DNA of 57,374 nt, filler included, from Platydemus manokwari (lineage: Eukaryota), in the NCBI GenBank assembly GCA_037951405.1. It is 6 parts of 6 records of this genome, joined end to end, with 100 filler letters (N's around TTAATTAATTAA, not from the genome) between each part and the next. Parts side by side here need not be neighbours in the genome. Positions count along the whole stretch, not along the records: positions 46,601 to 57,374 come from JBBMOY011106331.1; 5 more parts are not named here. One strand, written 5' to 3'. Position numbers and translations under genes: made by a program. The first letter of the stretch is position 1; each line of letters begins with the position of its first letter. Below, piece after piece: positions 46,601-57,374 of this stretch. Under the pieces are notes generated by a model. That model saw only the letters and a list, made by a program, of their open reading frames with translations, was not told where the DNA came from and did not search any database.

Positions 46601-46884
46601 ATGATTTGCTACAGCACACACACAAGTGTTTACATCTGGTGTCAAATTCCGGTTATTAAGTTATAGACCCAATAGTTTATCAGTTTCTAAATTGGTTTTA
46701 ACCAGCCCCATTTATATACTGCATTTTGCAATTCCTACACAAAATAACTCTGCTTTATTTAAATCGCCTTTTTTTAATAATCTTCTTTATTATCAGTGAT
46801 CCTCTTAACCGAATTCATAAATTTTTTTTTCATCATTACTAATTTTTTTAAAAAATAAAATTTAAAAGAAGCTCCGAAATAAAG

Positions 46885-47550
46885 TTAATCTTGAATAGCA
46901 CACATTTACTCCTCTCTAGTTAATATTTCAACATCTTTTTCTTTTAATATATAACAATAAGCATTACATTCATAATCAGAATCTGTTGCAATAGCCATTG
47001 TTTGATTACAACCATTTGTTATTAATTTCTCATCTTGATCACTGACATTAAAACAAAATAATGAATGACATATTTAATTTTAGTTTGTTTCCAAATTATT
47101 TACATACAGTGATATAAGCTAAATAGGGTTTTATTTGGCTGTTGTTTGTTATATGAAATTACATTTTATTCTTTGGACAATTAGAGCTATTTATTGATTA
47201 TTTCCAATTTTTTGAATAAACTTTGAACTATTTCTGATGTATTCAATTTCATATTTGAATCCTGCAATTATATCTTTTTGTCCATCATTAATGAAGCTAC
47301 CATGCATGTTGGATATTGATCATTTCGGAATACCAATAAAATTTAAATAATTTACCTGAATAGGTTCACCAGTATTGAATATTTCTAATAAACTTAATTC
47401 ATTTTCTAGATTTCAAGCTACTTCTGGACTACAAAATTCTGATGATTTAATAGTTAATTTTCCTTCACCGTTTGTACCTTAAAAAGTTCTTTATTATTCA
47501 TATTCCAATTTAAAGTTAACCTTGTCATCATTAGGTTTAATAATAATTTA
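46885..47550 (-). pseudogene. Probable Polinton/Maverick major capsid protein, C-terminal relic
   Basis: KLTIKSSEFCSPEVA*NLENELSLLEIFNTGEPIQVNY...IIAGFK...SLFCFNVSDQDEKLITNGCNQTMAIATDSDYECNAYCYILKEKDVEI resembles, from memory, the C-terminal half of Polinton MCPs (P.V.L...L.....G.P...; LF..D.S.Q.E.L...AYC.IL). Stops are present. Confidence 0.55.
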
Positions 47551-47711
47551 TAACTTTTTAAAAATCAAAAAAATTATTATAAAGGAAAGATTCCTTTATA
47601 AATTTTACAAGATTTTCTTCTTTTAAAACGTACAATATCTTATCCGTATCCGAAAATATATTTTGATGATGCATTTAGAATGTTTTTTTCTTTATTTATT
47701 TAAAAGGTTGA

Positions 47712-48160
47712 TTAGGACGATGCGAAATGGTATCAGAGTAACTGGTTTGGGATAAATATTTGGGATAGAATTTATCATCAATGCAACATATGAGAGTTCA
47801 ATTCAACATTCTCCTTTTGAAATATTGTTTGGACAAAGAATTAATATGCGTAGGTTACGACTAAATGAACCATGTCACCAAGACCAGATAATCAATGAAA
47901 CGGAAAAACAACTAAAATCAGTAACTACAAACTTAAGGAATTGATGCTAAAAAAATAGGTTCTAGAATTTTGGTGGTTGAAGAAAAAGTTTTAGTGAAGA
48001 AAGAACCACACAAGATAAAGGAGAGCAGAGGTTGTTATAAAGGTCCTCAGAGAATTTTGATCTTTTTAGGCCCACATCAAGTGCTTCTTGATTTCCAGGA
48101 CAGCCAAGACCTCGAAGAATTGAGTGGCTAAAGCTGATCTCAAAAACCACTGGAGAATGA
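47712..48160 (+). mobile_element. Gypsy integrase C-terminal relic, same family as 5925-6920
   Basis: Colinear nucleotide similarity to about 6480-6915 (TTTATCATCAATGCAACATAT...TTGTTTGGACAA.GAATTAATATGC...AAGAAAGAA.CACACAAGATAAAG...CTTCTTGATTTCCAGG). Confidence 0.88.
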
Positions 48161-51100
48161 AGTTGGATAAAAATAAATTTCAACGGAAACAACCGATGTT
48201 TTTACTACAATAAATTTCATTCAAGTACTGGTGTTTGTCCTTTGTAACCTAATAAAAATCCTGAAATTATTCAAGAATTGATGAAAAAATATAATGATAG
48301 AAAAATGATCTTAAAGGAAAAATCAAAAATCAAAGTTTTGAATCGAATAAGAATAAATTAAAAAAGAATTTTGACATATATAAGATTTTAATGTGTTATG
48401 CCAATTGAGGAAGTTTGTAAAACTTGTAACTTATAGATTGACTGATTTAAAATGTGTTAAAAAGTTTTATTAAATTGAATTGATTAGAATAATTTTTCTA
48501 TGGTTAAATTTTTGTGACTCAGTCGTAGTGATAATAAGAGACGAAATGATTGTAGGAATTCAAATCAGAAGCAAAATATATTTTCTAAAGATATATTTCT
48601 AAAAGCTTGAATGAGAATTATTTTATCTGATGAAGAAAACATCGTAGATTACAAATCTGTTTTCAAAATTAAAATCGTAATATAATTCGAGAAAACATTC
48701 GATTTTAAAGTTTCAAAAATATAATAATATTAAAAACAAATTTAAATTATCTATTTATAATAGTAAGTAATTTATTAATTAAAAAGAATACAAAATGGGT
48801 TTATTTAACACTAACCGTATTTGTTTTATTATTATTATTTAATAGTATGACGGCAGTTCATTTTGTATTCCTTTAGTTTATGTTTCTTTAAGTCATATTA
48901 GTATGTTAGGAACGCATCTTTATGGGCACTTTAACGCGTTAAACAATCGCCATTTTTATCAACAAAACCAAAAATTGTATTTATCTTGACCTATAAATCT
49001 AACATTTTATTTTAAATTAGTTTTCTCAAGGGTATCATTATGTCAAAAATTATTATGAGAAGGATCTTTATCTTTTTAAATTATATACAGTAAATATTAT
49101 TGTTTTCACAACCTTTATTTATCTAAGAATTTTCGAGTAAAAACTGTGTCGAATAATGTTATGAAAAAAATTATATATGAAAGTTTGATTATAAATTTAT
49201 TGAAGAAATATATTTACAAATCATGTAGCTTTATTTATTAAATAAAAAGATATTGATTTTATAAAAAATTAATATAAAAATTAAACATTTTAAAGCTATT
49301 TTATTGAACACGTACATTGCCTTTCAATTCCCACTATACGGTCTAGAAGTACATCTTCTTAATTTTCAATCTCAATCCATGGAGATAAAACATTATGGTT
49401 TGGATCAATTAGATTGAGTCCTTTATTTGGATTAAATGGATTGTGATTACAAATTCTGTCATTATAATTGATAGATTTGTCATTGCACAGTGTTATTTTA
49501 GAAGATGTTTTATTCATTCCATTACGATTTATTGAGGATTCATTGGAGATATGTATTGGAGGTAAAATTGGATGACTGATTTTGATATACGTTGACGGAA
49601 TTTTTAAACTCAAAGTTTTCAATGAAGTTCTTTGACGAATTGAAGACTTAAACATTAAACGATAATTATTTGGTAAATGAATGAGAGAAAAGCCCATTGA
49701 CATTTCCTATGAAAGCAATTGATAATTAAATTAACCAATGGGTTTATTGAAATCACTGGTAATGAAAAAATATTTCCTGCAACATTGAATCATACAATAC
49801 AGTAATAAGATTTATATGCATTTGAAATGTGATTGAAAACTATAGTTTTAATTTCCAATTATCTATAAATTAATAATATTATCTATAAGTTATAACTATA
49901 ATTACAAAATAATAATAATATTAGGTTTAGGTTAGGTAGCATTTTAGTCTATTAGGCCGTTTCACAGGGTTTAGAATGTACACTAGACCAAAGAAAACAA
50001 ATTGTGCAGTGTACACTATCAACACAACACTAATTTATTTAAGGCATATACGGCCAATCGGAAACATGTTGCATACATAAAATGTTTATACGAAAATAAA
50101 CAATTAGCACTGCTTCAGACATAAACTAGATGGTACATCAACCCATTGGTACACAATTACAATAATATCTGTTGGGTAGATCACAAAAACAATCAAAATG
50201 TTCACAGGAATCATAGAAATAATTCCGAAATGGTTTATACACAGCTTCGATAGCGCTTGTGTCAGTAGTCAATCAAATTCTTTCGATATATCAGTCCTTT
50301 TTAGGACTTAGTAATGGCATAGAAAAGAAACATCGAAATTCGCCAATGACAGAAAAGACAAGAAAATTTTCTAACAGATTAACTTTATTAAATGAAACAA
50401 AAAAGGATTTCGACACACTCTGTTTGATTTTATCACTATTTGTGATCGAGATTTCATCAAATCTGTGATAATCTACTGATTATTTTATTAAGAGATTTGG
50501 CAATAGTCTCATTGAACTTGTTAATATAATATGATAGTCTCATAATCACATTGTATTTGAATAATTCTATTTATTTTGACTCCGACCTCGTTCCTAATTA
50601 AAACAGCCAAGAGAAAATTTAAAGTTAAAAATAAAATATTTATTTAAATTATTATTTTTAAACATTGTTTATAATATTTCTCTTTACAAATTATTTTAAT
50701 TTTATCATTTCTCATGTAATGAGTAGTATGAAATAAAAATATGAGTTATTTATAATTTTTACTCACATGCACAAATTGGTGGGTTAAGGAGCATTCATTA
50801 CCCTTTAAAAATCCCGTAATCTTTAATATCTATATTACAGAACTTGTATTTGAATAATTATTTAAGAGTTAGGAATTGATAAAAATAATTTTTTAACAAC
50901 TTTTATCGAAATAGATTTTTATTAGCACTGAGAGACTTAATAAGTATAGGAGTCTACTGACCATTTATAAGTTGTTTGTAATTATTATTTTAAATACTTG
51001 CACATTTCACTTCAGAAACACATTATTTGTAGATCATCGTGAAAACCTGAAAAAATAAGTCAGGAACTTATTTTAAATATAATATTGAGCTTGAGATTAT

Positions 51101-51250
51101 TAATGAAGCGAGTCTATTCTATCATTCGACAGTGTTTTGTCAAATAACTGGTAGAACAAATCATTATTTTTATAAAATAAACAATATAAATGGCTTTAGC
51201 TTATATTTTATACCAGAACACCTTTAAAAGTAATGTCTTCATTGATAATT

Positions 51251-51616
51251 TCAGGTTTTTCCCGTTTGTACACACCGACCATCAATGCAAACAGGACATG
51301 GACTCACCAGCATGCATTCAGTATCATATAAGGCTAGATATAAAATATTTCTTCAAAAATATCAATAGTAACGTTATTGATATATTTTCATTAATATTAA
51401 AATTTATTTGTGACAAACATTAGGTATTATATTTATATATAATTCAATCTGACCAGTTGTCGTCGTGTCTTCAGAACGAATAACATTTCCATGACAATCT
51501 TCTAACCTATAGAATATTCAATATATAATCTATATCTATTGTAAATGATCGATAATTAATTACTTCAGCAACATTGATATAACAATAACCAATACCAGAC
51601 GCATATTGATTTTCAT
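51251..51616 (-). CDS. Small secreted 4-Cys peptide B1 (62 aa; exons 51564-51616, 51454-51506, 51251-51333)
   Basis: MKINMRLVLVIVISMLLK|LEDCHGNVIRSEDTTTTA|LYDTECMLVSPCPVCIDGRCVQTGKT*. GT-AG introns of 57 nt (phase 2) and 120 nt (phase 1). TATAAA at 51659-51654. Paralog at 54471-54898. Confidence 0.82.
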
Positions 51617-52289
51617 GTAGACGATATAACTAAATTACTTGACAAATGTTGCATTTATAAGAGTTTAAAAATATCCAGAAAAATATCGTTTAAACTCTAA
51701 CCAATAAGAAAGTTAAACTCAAATCAACTTGATGGCAATACGTTGCCAGATTAATTTTAAATTAAATTTCGATTAAGTTCTTGAAAGATTAAGTTTAAAG
51801 TTGTTTACAAAATTATTTTTTACTAACAAAGCTTAGCTCAAAGACAATATTCTATAACAATTAATTGTTTTACTTAAGTCTGAAAATATTGATTGGAATT
51901 TGGTGATGTCTGTTATAATTCATGATCTATGAGGATAGACATATGGCTAGATAATTCTACCAACATCTGACTTTTTACAGAGCCATACCGTAGGCCGCGT
52001 GTATTATTTACAGTTAATTACTTAATAATTTTTTCTACAAATACTAAGATGACAATGTAATTAAATAATGCTTTATGGATTGCTTCGTGGGATCGTGTCA
52101 ACATTATTAATAATTTAAATATAGGTAAGATTAAAATTAATAATTAAGAAATATTTTTAAATGATTATAAAAAAACAATAAAAAATATTTTAAAACTGAT
52201 TTTTTATAAAAGATAAAAATTTAAAAATAAAAGATTGTTGAAAATAATCGAATATTTGTTTAAAATGGATGTATCATAAATACATATTA

Positions 52290-53170
52290 TTAGTTCGGTG
52301 AAATTAAACATGAAAATGAAGAAGTTTTTGCAAGTAACATGGCGACCACACATGTGGATGAGATCCTTAGTTCGCTGTTGCCAGAAAGATTCAAAATGGT
52401 TGATAATGTCAAAGTGTAATCGATATTCTGAGGATGGGAAAATCTTGAAGCACGTCCAATGCGATGATATATTAACGCGGTTGGACGACGGCTTAATGAA
52501 CAATTTTAGACGATAGATACCAAGATGGGGTGTCAGTGCATACTGAGGAAGGCCTTTGGCCAAAGGAAATCCTTCACTCAGGATTCGACGGAGGTCTTGA
52601 AGTTTAAAAGTAAAGCCGCACCGTGTATTTTAAAAAGATGTATAAACTAGTGGAAGACAGATTGTCTCACAATATAACTAAAGAGGAGTTAACTGCTTTA
52701 TAATTAGAGAAGCAAATTCAGATGAGAGACATTGAGGAAGTGGATCAAATAAAAGAAACCGCAAAAAAGCTAGATAAATTTAGAAATAAGGAAAGAGAAG
52801 CAAACACTATGGTAGTAGAGAAATGGGCCACCAGAGGGCAACCAAAAGCTAGGCCTCCGGAAAGGAAGGTGGGGAATAATACCTTCTATAATTACCGAAA
52901 ACCAGGGAACATCGTAACAAATTGTAAAAGCGAGAAAGTAGGCTACATAGCGAGAAATTGTCCAAATGCCAGATGTCAAAACCGAGAACAATCACGAGAT
53001 TGAATGTTATACGAATCTAGAAAGAAAAGACAACAAACGTCCAACTACCATTAAGGGACATCAATAAACCATCGAAGATTTGGAGAGAGTCAGAGTACCA
53101 TTGGAAGAGATTCAATGAATGTAAATAGACAGAATTTCAACGAACAAAATTACAGAATGGTAAACTGAAA
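52290..53170 (+). mobile_element. Gypsy-type gag relic
   Basis: Decayed zinc knuckles FYNYRKPGNIVTNC, EKVGYIARNCP and RCQNREQS, preceded by a charged helical region. Stops and frameshifts are present. Confidence 0.7.
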
Positions 53171-54470
53171 TAATAGACAAGTAGTGGCGGTTGAACAATA
53201 ATCGGATTTTTATATATACATTTAATGTGTAAAAATTTAAAGCCAATTATAATTGTTAGCCGCTGCCATTTTAAAAAACACACATTAAAATCGAACTAAA
53301 ATCTATTTAAATACAACAAAGTTGATTGGGTTTCCATATTAAAAAAAATTAGATCAATATTGTATGAATCTTTTAAAAAATCTGGGCATTGCACACATTT
53401 ATCGAGATATTTACATTTCAACTCAGTTGAATTTTATTTATCCTCTCGTACTATCTGAAATTCTGAACGGATTTAGAGTAGTGCTTTTTATAATATGTAT
53501 ATCTAATAGATGGATTCTGTCAGATGCTTTAGGACGAATGGATCTCAAATACATCATTGGGATTTTGATTTGATCACAGATCTTGAAATAAACTAATTTA
53601 TCGCTTTATACTGTTGATGTGCAATTTTACTACGAAATTATCACTTGTTGTCCGCTATGTTCAATTTATTCAACATAAAGATATTTGGAAGGCTTTTTCC
53701 CGACTTACTCACACTGTTTTCGGGCATTTTTAGTAAAACTGTCATTTAAATCTACACTTTTGGATGTACATATGATTGGTAGCGGTGCTCTTGAACTTAA
53801 AATTTTCGATGCCACTATTCATCTATTTACAAATAACATTAAGGATGGGTTAATTGTCTCTTTTATAAGAATACAAAAACACCTGGCATAATCTAAATAG
53901 GTATTCTATTACAGTCTGCACATCTTCATGATGAGGAAATAAACCTAGATATGTAGTATCACATGCCATTGTAACTTTCTAAGTTAGTATGCCGACATTT
54001 ATTATATCTCATACGTGAAAATCTTATGCCATGTGGATCTTCAGTAAAACAGATTTGTGCACTTCTTAATCTACTCTGACTTCCACATATATCTTAGATG
54101 TTTACAAATCAATTAAAAGCCAAGAACGAAACTTCTGCATAGAAACAATGTAGAATCATTTTAGACATCAAGTATACCTAAATTCGAATCAATATTTTAA
54201 AATCTATAAGCAATAATTTTTAAAATATTTCTTTACTTAAAAATTCTTTACTTATTCCAATGATCTATGTTATCAATAAAGATTATTCAAGAATTTTCAA
54301 GCTAAATGTAAAACAGATTTTAACTTTCATGGTAAATATTATTTAATATGAGACTGAATTGTTCATTGCTATTTTCCTTTCATTAAACTTAAAACTTGTC
54401 GTTGATTTAATAATAAAAAGAAATAATGGAAATTATAAATTTTATTCGAAATTATATTTTCGTCGAATTC

Positions 54471-54898
54471 CTATGGAGTTTGTGTTGATTCTACACATCG
54501 ACCATTGATACAGAAAGGGCACGGTCTCTTCATCATACATTCATTCTCATGGTACACAACTGAAAATTATCAAAAACGATATAAATATTTAATCACAGTA
54601 ATTAAAGTAGAAAAAATTTATAATTTAGATTTTTTTATTAAATAAATAATTTCCAGAACATATTTACACTTTATTTGTGATTAAATATTCTGTAAATTAC
54701 AAATATTTTAATCTAACTGTATTCAGTAGGCTTTGTTGTGGGTGGCGTGAACATATCAGTATAGCGAATGTACCTGGCTTGATAGTTTTGAAATCTGTAA
54801 AAATAATATTAAAATTAAAATTCGAATATCAAATTGCCTACAAAATATTACTTCAATATAATAGATATCAAAACTATTATTATCACACGTTTATACAT
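54471..54898 (-). CDS. Small secreted 4-Cys peptide B2 (70 aa; exons 54852-54898, 54718-54794, 54471-54559)
   Basis: MYKRVIIIVLISIILK|FQNYQARYIRYTDMFTPPTTKPTEYI|VYHENECMMKRPCPFCINGRCVESTQTP*. Introns of 57 nt (phase 2) and 158 nt (phase 1). TATAAA at 54940-54935; AATAAA about 25 nt after the stop. Confidence 0.84.
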
Positions 54899-56444
54899 TA
54901 TAAACAATAGATTCATTCAAATAGAATTAACTGTTTTATAGACGACAAAATCATAAAAAATAATAATCATGCTCTCTTTAAAAGTTAAACTCAATCCAAC
55001 TTAGCAACAGAGCGTTACCAGATTTATTTCTAAATGTCGACCGTTATAACATATTTAGACTTGAGTTCTTGAAAAGATTAACTAAATAATTGATTTATTT
55101 ATCCGATATTTAATTTCTTTGAATTGTTTGGGTTAATAATTTTTGTCGTTGAGAATAAAACCCTGATATTGTAGGAATCCACGGAAATAATAAAGAATAT
55201 GTTTATTCATGTCTCAATATTTTTATCAGATCAAATGAATGTGTTTCTGGAATTTGTTTTTCAAATAGATGAGCATTACAAAATATTTATTCACCAATTT
55301 TGATTTGATTGTAATGATCAGCAGCAATTTGTGAATAAAAATGAAGAAAATTATTTCAAGTTGACCTGAACAGAAATGCATTCTTGGAATATTTTATTTC
55401 GCCGGTTTAGTAATAAAGAATGCATTTATCAAACCTCAATTACAGTCAGCAAATATGTATGAATTAAAAATAAAGACCATGTGATCGAATCTTGGAATAT
55501 AATATCTAACAGACTTTTATAATACGTCATTGTAATTTGCTCAGTACTTTTTGGAATATTAAATATTTCAATTTTTGATATAATATGATAATTACGATTG
55601 TTGAAGTATCCATTGAGGTTTCCATTTAATATATTCATAATTATTTTCAAAATAATATTCAATTTTTCTAAATAAATAAAATCTTTTTAAATCTCCTGAA
55701 AATCCCAATGAAAAAAATATCCTTTAAATGCCTATGCTGAAATGCCAAATTTGTGAGAGTCCTTTCAAACCATTCAAGCTTTAAAAGCCCATGATAAATT
55801 CAAAAGCCTATAGCAAAATATAACGCTTCTATTATCATGATTATGATTATTTTACTATTAATAATAATAATAATAATAAAATTTTAAAATTAATAAGTTC
55901 CTTCATAAGATTTAATTTAAATTATTTGTTTTCCCTAATTAAAAAAGTACACACAATCTTGTAAATCTTTTGAAATATAATTTACATCATATTGCTTAGC
56001 TCTTTCATCAATTCTTTTAAAATTGGTGGAATATATAATTTTTCAGTTTCATTATAATTATTGATTATTTCACCATTATTTTCTAAATGTTCTTGAAGAT
56101 TCGTAGCTGGTAAAAACTATTATCTTTCAATATTAGTTCGGATTATATCTTAAGCAATCATTAGAGATGACTAACCCCTTCATGACCACCAACGTTTATT
56201 TTCTGAACACCATACATAATTTGCGGCGGATTGTCCTTATATTCTTCCATCGTTTATACTAGAGACCAGTGATTATCTGAGTGCCTTCAAAGATATCTCA
56301 GTTTCATTTAATAGATATAAACTTTTCAAATGAAATTCTCCCGAATGACAACCAGTAGAAAAGTTATTTAAAACATTATTATTTGTAAATCTATATCCTC
56401 ATTATAAAAGGAAATCAAGTTTCTTAGACACATAATACATGAAT

Positions 56445-57140
56445 AAGATATCAAAACTGACTCGAATATGATTAAGGCAATCGAAAAGTTTGAAAGACAA
56501 AAACTCAATAAAAAATTTAAGAAGCTTCTTAGCGATTTGTAGCTTCTACAGTAGATTTATACAAGACCATTCTAGAGCTTTCCAACATTATGTGAAAAGA
56601 ATAACCATGAATTAATGTGGTACGAAGCATTTGATAAGGCATTTCAAGAAATGAAAAAGACATTGACATGATTGCCATTTTAACATTCCGTGATTTATTC
56701 TAGACATCGTCGCAAGCTTTGGCACAATAGGATGATGAAAGATGAACGGAAGGATTAACAAGAAAATTAACGTGTAATCACATACGGATCACATGCAATG
56801 AGCTAACATGTGAAAGGATATCGCATCACTAGGAAAGAATTACTGGCGAGATATTATTTCTCACTGCTTTTCAAAAATTCCCTGTATGGCAAAAGATTCA
56901 CACTTAGAATGGATAACAAAGCAATTACATTCATGCTAAAAATAAGAAATCCGATAATACTATGATTTCAATTATGGTCGAATTATTTAAGCACTTTTGA
57001 TATAAACATGATATTTAAAAAGAGTGTTAATCACGAAAATGCAGATATGCTCTCAAGAAAGGCATGTGAAATATGTTCCCAATGCTTGACAAAACATGAG
57101 AATGCAAAGAAAAGAAATATGAAAACAGAATACCAACCAT
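56445..57140 (+). mobile_element. Gypsy pol relic (RT thumb/connection and RNase H)
   Basis: IKTDSNMIKAI...LRSFLAICSFYSRFI...AFQEMKKTLT...FILDIVAS...VITYGSHAMS...ITRKELLA...LYGKRFTLRMDNKAI...HENADMLSR. Confidence 0.9.
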
Positions 57141-57374
57141 AATGTCAGAGAATAAAGGAAAAGAATGACAAATAAACAATAAATAAATAGAAAATATTAA
57201 AAAATGGAATATTTATTTTTTGATATTTTTCAGCTATCCATTTCGATACTGAATGTATGTTACGCAGTCCGTACCGTTACCTAGTCTGTGATTGATGTGT
57301 ATTAGGTTGTTGGGAAAATAATGGCCGTTTGTAAACGTATACTTTAAAATACTATAACTCGCTTTAAAATGAAC

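Follow-up and report, generated by a model that had tools for sequence, protein, structure and literature searches.

In gene families of small secreted disulfide-rich peptides, the precursor has 60–70 amino acids (aa), a separate exon supplies its hydrophobic N-terminus, and a variable linker leads to a cysteine module at the C-terminus; the paralogues lie in tandem, a pseudogene accompanies them, and sequence comparison reveals no relatives. Among them, families of host-defence, venom and effector peptides usually evolve by duplication and loss. A locus resembling them in all these features is found in a window of 57,374 nucleotides (nt) made of six joined parts of the Platydemus manokwari assembly GCA_037951405.1; the piece analysed here, 46601–57374 (10.8 kb, G+C 27%), comes from record JBBMOY011106331.1. 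It carries two three-exon gene models on the minus strand, gene 1 (51616–51251) and gene 2 (54898–54471), and a decayed third copy of their last exon on the opposite strand. The models being real, selected and paralogous genes is well supported. The reading favoured here, with a probability of roughly 0.6, is that they belong to a family of secreted disulfide peptides that is lineage-restricted and co-regulated and evolves by birth and death, with two intact tandem genes and a dead inverted copy. Judging from the sequences, the locus behaves like other secreted cysteine-peptide genes, as a class tandem and fast-evolving, but has a cysteine framework of its own. In contrast to conotoxin-type families, in which the reverse holds, its cysteine module is the most conserved part and its signal and spacer diverge. 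Two further differences are that its members have no dibasic processing site before the core and that they are acidic to neutral, not cationic.

The two genes and their nearest signals read as follows:
51654–51659, minus strand: gene 1 TATAAA, starting 43 nt 5' of the ATG, with 37 nt between
51564–51616, minus strand: gene 1 exon 1 (coding part), ATG, two basic and 11 hydrophobic residues, phase 2 end
51507–51563, minus strand: gene 1 intron 1, 57 nt, GT..AG
51454–51506, minus strand: gene 1 exon 2, linker acidic and rich in Thr, including a fifth Cys, phase 1 end
51334–51453, minus strand: gene 1 intron 2, 120 nt, GT..AG
51251–51333, minus strand: gene 1 exon 3 (coding part with stop), four-cysteine core
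54935–54940, minus strand: gene 2 TATAAA, starting 42 nt 5' of the ATG, with 36 nt between
54852–54898, minus strand: gene 2 exon 1 (coding part), ATG, K-R and 11 hydrophobic residues, phase 2 end
54795–54851, minus strand: gene 2 intron 1, 57 nt, GT..AG
54718–54794, minus strand: gene 2 exon 2, Tyr/Thr/Pro-rich linker, phase 1 end
54560–54717, minus strand: gene 2 intron 2, 158 nt, GT..AG
54471–54559, minus strand: gene 2 exon 3 (coding part with stop), four-cysteine core
54441–54446, minus strand: gene 2 AATAAA poly(A) signal, 25 nt past the stop

All eight intron boundaries lie where the initial annotation had placed them, with GT..AG ends, phase 2 for the first intron and phase 1 for the second in each gene, and a first intron of 57 nt in both. 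The spliced frames are open, as it had also stated, and give precursors of 62 aa (gene 1) and 70 aa (gene 2), both ending in the core E-C-M-x3-P-C-P-x-C-I-(D/N)-G-R-C-V with the cysteine spacing C-x5-C-x2-C-x4-C. Two of its statements need adjusting: the peptide described as having four cysteines does have four in exon 3, but a fifth is present in exon 2 of gene 1 (E-D-C-H-G), and the TATAAA boxes are present before both ATGs, at 37 and 36 nt rather than at 37–38 nt. The stretch encoded by exon 1 ends in a conserved I-S-x-x-L-K in both genes, and the divergent exon 2 (a Thr/Pro/Tyr-rich spacer) keeps I-R-x-x-D as its sole alignable trace. Gene 2 has a second in-frame ATG 18 nt upstream, at 54916, which is probably outside the mRNA because the TATA box is so close. 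At the 3' end, gene 1 shows only a variant TATAAA at the place matching the AATAAA of gene 2. A filter combining TATAAA, ATG and a hydrophobic stretch on both strands returned the two gene starts and a weaker, unrelated minus-strand site at 50214. As had been supposed, the genes are absent from the open reading frame (ORF) track because no exon frame exceeds 37 codons, the length of the longest one; the plus-strand ORFs overlying the exons are antisense artefacts.

In a local tblastn search of the 10.8-kb piece, exon 3 of one gene retrieves that of the other (E = 2.4e-9). The identity between the genes is 47% in intron 1 and 49% in the upstream and downstream flanks, about the level seen between unrelated AT-rich sequences; the two copies are old. 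Over the 17 codons of the core, 12 residues are identical, six of these 12 being encoded by differing synonymous codons, and the proportion of differing synonymous sites (pS 0.67, 7 of 10.5) greatly exceeds that of replacement sites (pN 0.15, 6 of 40.5; Nei-Gojobori counts, Fisher p = 0.003). Such a pattern is the mark of purifying selection acting on the core at the protein level and does not fit a recent duplication: while synonymous sites approach saturation, the core, the splice sites, the phases and the length of intron 1 have been kept. The earlier proposal of a selected core amid otherwise diverged sequence is thereby borne out.

These data bear directly on the possibility that the models are non-functional, i.e. 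that they represent a decaying duplicated segment or exons pieced together from the GT and AG dinucleotides that are frequent in AT-rich DNA. Such an explanation could draw on the lack of transcript evidence (only DNA contigs cover the stretch), on the weak donors, on the third copy, which is clearly dead, and on the retroelement debris found throughout the locus. It has to account for synonymous sites that approach saturation when 12 of 17 core residues, the four cysteines, the splice sites, the phases and the promoter block are all retained, and for a dead copy whose decay looks quite different from the intact pair. It is considered highly improbable.

The dead copy provides a useful comparison with the two intact genes:
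57234–57301, plus strand: decayed third copy of exon 3 that retains the acceptor and phase, lacks two Cys and has an in-frame TGA at 57293–57295

The acceptor of this pseudogene (tttttcag) is kept and its first half still reads F-D-T-E-C-M-L-R-S-P; in its second half the second and third cysteines are gone and most other core residues have changed. This second half aligns with gene 2 codon for codon without any insertion or deletion, the TGA replacing an Arg codon (CGA). When the copy is compared with gene 2, pN (0.36) is higher than pS (0.23), and the copy appears to be evolving as an unselected, relaxed sequence. The tail of its intron is likewise similar to the gene 2 counterpart, and the copy is therefore a younger offshoot of the gene 2 lineage. 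Exon 1, exon 2 and the promoter block were sought for this copy within the piece and none was found. The occurrence of a dead third copy argues for evolution of the family by birth and death. Just upstream of it lie broken remains of the pol region of a long terminal repeat (LTR) retroelement (56807–57139, plus strand), interrupted by stops or frameshifts: an RNase H-like fragment (PF17917, E = 9.5e-5) and, after it, a frame resembling an integrase N-terminus.

Each intact gene is preceded by a similar non-coding sequence of 49 nt:
51709–51757, minus strand: gene 1 upstream (promoter) block, 76% identical to 54981–55029
54981–55029, minus strand: gene 2 upstream (promoter) block, 76% identical to 51709–51757

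This block is the best direct repeat of the whole piece. On the gene strand it includes two sub-blocks, AATCTGGYAACG and AAGTTG-NN-TTGAGTTTAACTT, which have the same 22-nt spacing in both genes and which occur at no other place within the piece (0.04 and 0.02, respectively, expected by chance). The distance from the end of the block to TATAAA is 51 nt in gene 1 and 42 nt in gene 2. Because neutral sites are near saturation, the block looks retained, and it is therefore a candidate cis-regulatory module; its retention upstream of both genes implies that they may be co-regulated. In gene 1, the first sub-block is included in a palindrome, TGGCAA-cgta-TTGCCA.

Depth and variants were obtained from an independent set of DNA contigs belonging to the sole public run that carries the stretch. 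Both genes show a unique depth in these contigs (~13–18) and are therefore single-copy and not part of a repeat. A 1905-nt contig matches gene 2 with 100% identity, and another is 100% identical to 51222–51504, which covers gene 1 from exon 3 through intron 2 and across most of exon 2. A contig spanning the border between intron 1 and exon 2 of gene 1 carries four differences (51506–51531), of which the one at 51506 would turn the Lys of the exon junction into Asn. For the gene 1 promoter (51604–51793) the contigs also show a second haplotype, with 11 substitutions and a 7-nt insertion but an intact TATAAA. Of these changes, the 49-nt block contains the substitution at 51734 and the insertion, which is located behind 51756; both exact sub-blocks are unchanged. 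A contig that joins 51561 to 53252 was left uninterpreted, its 25-nt anchor being too short in AT-rich DNA.

Among known peptides, scorpion toxins of the alpha-KTx family (CS-alpha/beta fold) show a notable local likeness; they are the only proteins in which a text search found the hexapeptide C-I-N-G-R-C present in gene 2. In the alpha-KTx toxin LaIT6, the C-terminal hairpin is made by this hexapeptide, with C-x5-C-P-K-P-C ahead of it (PMC12542817). Gene 2 has a similar earlier segment, C-x5-C-P, and a helix followed by a hairpin is likewise predicted for its product. However, the toxins contain six cysteines (C-x5-C-x3-C-x10-C-x4-C-x-C) with a helix CxxxC paired to a strand CxC, the defining trait of that fold, whereas the present peptides have four in the module and no CxC. 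Since the six-cysteine CxxxC/CxC framework is absent, the peptides are not assigned to alpha-KTx, and the resemblance may serve as a lead only. More generally, their four cysteines, the CxxC, the missing CxC and the lack of any Pfam toxin or defensin match set them apart from CS-alpha/beta scorpion toxins and insect-type defensins. Inhibitor cystine knots (PF07740) and cyclotides (PF03784) need six cysteines in a knotted core of three disulfides, and the module has four; the corresponding score in the ESM Atlas (0.78) is below the informative level.

Two-disulfide beta-hairpin antimicrobial peptides (AMPs) offer another comparison. Tachyplesin, gomesin and androctonin are strongly cationic and have two cysteines on each strand (C-x3-C-x4-C-x3-C or similar). 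The present peptides are like them in having four cysteines within ~16 residues and a predicted beta-hairpin, and unlike them in both charge and cysteine placement. After the hydrophobic N-terminus, K+R and D+E number 3 vs 7 in gene 1 and 6 vs 5 in gene 2, which gives net charges of about -4 (acidic) and +1 (neutral), and only two of the four cysteines are on the hairpin, one per strand. A tachyplesin- or gomesin-type AMP is rejected on these two grounds. The initial annotation had left the choice between a toxin, an AMP, a protease inhibitor and a signalling peptide; of these, the classical cationic AMP is disfavoured by the charges, and this acidic to neutral character suggests a target-binding peptide rather than a membrane-active one.

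Relatives were searched for with the third-exon frames alone (31 and 33 residues). For both frames, Pfam gave no family at E values up to 10 and NCBIfam nothing usable; a DsbB row, with E = 0.076 and 13 bits where the cut-off is 157, was dismissed as noise. PDB sequences gave rows at E > 1 only. In the ESM Atlas, searched by features, the best score was 0.81, with recognition below threshold, and the knottin and cyclotide rows indicate merely a small cysteine peptide. A HMMER profile built from the two frames obtained a single, spurious match among 1.84 billion proteins; the repeat protein concerned matches profile positions 2–13 five times, i.e. a partly intron-derived N-terminal stretch, and never the cysteine core. 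The family had not been recognized initially, and it is not recognized by any of these searches either. A search for the core pattern, which the initial annotation had suggested for transcriptomes, was run with back-translated patterns on metagenome, viral and prokaryotic genome contigs and yielded chance matches in bacterial genes only: a GC-rich bacterial surface-protein gene with P-C-P-V-C-I-N-G-H-C-V in a metagenome, and 11 residues in a Mycobacterium contig. No match was found in viral contigs.

The absence of relatives is nevertheless weak evidence, because a comparison of the two paralogues yields just 38.9 bits, where ~41 bits are needed for significance in 1.84 billion proteins, and because spliced mini-genes are seldom present in protein libraries. 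Both points leave some room for the view that the genes are real and belong to a peptide family already described in this organism or its relatives, for example in venom, immunity or symbiosis; gene calling rarely picks up spliced mini-genes in unannotated eukaryotic contigs, and C-I-N-G-R-C does occur in alpha-KTx toxins. Such an affiliation is rather unlikely, given that the third-exon frames match nothing in Pfam, NCBIfam, PDB sequences or the Atlas and that the cysteine framework fits none of the families compared.

Structure prediction had also been proposed for these peptides. AlphaFold was run twice, on a two-sequence alignment of exon 3 and on exon 3 of gene 2 alone, and in both models E-C-M forms a short helix, P-C-P a loop, and x-C-I and R-C-V the two strands of a hairpin connected by a (D/N)-G turn; the pLDDT is ~66, i.e. 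low to moderate confidence. Asn-Gly and Asp-Gly are classic formers of type I' turns. As the turn has two residues, the third and fourth cysteines would face each other beside the pair that flanks it, and a cross-strand disulfide between them, with a bond between the first and second cysteines, is one plausible pairing in the models. A Foldseek search of the exon 3 model against PDB gave no match.

In both genes the N-terminus consists of a basic n-region of two residues and an 11-residue hydrophobic core. It might be asked whether this segment is an uncleaved membrane anchor, or the product cytosolic, the C-terminal cysteines binding a metal such as zinc instead of forming disulfides. C-P-x-C is the classical zinc-knuckle motif, no canonical signal-peptidase site is seen past the hydrophobic stretch, and PDB rows align P-C-P-x-C with the zinc site region of inositol-pentakisphosphate 2-kinase (E ~3). 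These rows are non-significant, though, and there is a single CxxC knuckle where zinc ribbons need two. Eleven hydrophobic residues are too short to span a membrane and are typical of a signal-peptide core, and an intron right after the hydrophobic exon is the usual layout of secreted-peptide genes. An unsecreted, metal-binding product is thus improbable. The zinc ribbon or knuckle mini-domain is rejected as a class for the same reason, since it needs two CxxC/CxxH knuckles and the peptides have one C-P-x-C and two isolated cysteines.

Several observations weigh against a co-regulated family of secreted disulfide peptides. No RNA run carrying the stretch was found among public runs, only DNA contigs. 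The donors (GTAATT, GTCAGA, GTAATA, GTTAGA) are weak compared with the usual GTRAGT consensus. Selection was tested on 17 codons, and no relatives were found beyond the 10.8-kb piece with the third-exon frames. The number of cysteines in gene 1 is odd (five), a clear c-region with small residues at -1/-3 is lacking save for the conserved I-S, and the confidence of the structural models is limited.

With these points taken into account, the favoured reading of a secreted, birth-and-death family can be described as follows. Each intact gene would be transcribed from its own TATA promoter under the control of the shared upstream block, both genes being switched on together, and the transcripts would be spliced at the two introns. 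The basic-then-hydrophobic N-terminus encoded by exon 1 would most likely route the product to the secretory pathway, where the signal would be removed. Exon 2 would provide a fast-evolving Thr/Pro-rich spacer, possibly O-glycosylated or trimmed. Exon 3 would encode the functional module of ~25 residues, consisting of a helix with the first cysteine, the P-C-P loop and a beta-hairpin, and its four cysteines would form two disulfides in the endoplasmic reticulum. The mature, disulfide-stabilized C-terminal module would then bind an extracellular target, in a role that may lie in defence, venom, symbiosis or signalling. At the level of the locus, the family evolves via duplication and loss.

The genome is AT-rich and has spliceosomal introns and abundant LTR-retroelement debris. 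The following features lie between the two genes:
52053–53342, strand not assigned: high-copy repeat, contig depth ~50 in the lowest bin, hundreds elsewhere, up to 8000, compared with 13–16 over the genes and ~14 for unique DNA
52704–53000, plus strand: decayed gag-like ORF with a zinc-knuckle remnant, inside the repeat

Because of its high depth and of this decayed gag-like ORF, the region 52053–53342 is identified as a high-copy retroelement fragment, separate from the genes; a word-based protein search gave no relatives for the ORF. At 47756–47941 (plus strand), an integrase-C-terminus-like frame, judged by eye only, is broken by stops or frameshifts. At 46909–47073 (minus strand), an open frame of 55 codons contains six cysteines and matches nothing in Pfam; the frame may be due to chance or represent an exon of a further small cysteine-rich protein. 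A tRNA scan found none, and Rfam gave one chance-level row (CRISPR-DR50 repeat, E = 0.94).

A bolder proposal is that the locus represents an undescribed extracellular effector family (of toxins, host-defence or signalling peptides) of a single lineage, with its own cysteine framework, a dedicated promoter module and a new minimal two-disulfide fold; this is put forward tentatively, at slightly less than even odds. Until linked to a tissue of expression and a target, the family counts as one orphan among many such peptide families. If expressed, the peptides would provide a compact, easily synthesized two-disulfide scaffold without recognizable relatives, and such scaffolds are raw material for research on toxins, antimicrobials and signalling peptides. 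The case also shows how families of three-exon mini-genes slip past ORF-based and prokaryote-style gene calling. With its built-in controls, namely an intact pair, a dead copy and a promoter block, the locus constitutes a small system for studies of birth-and-death evolution and co-regulation.

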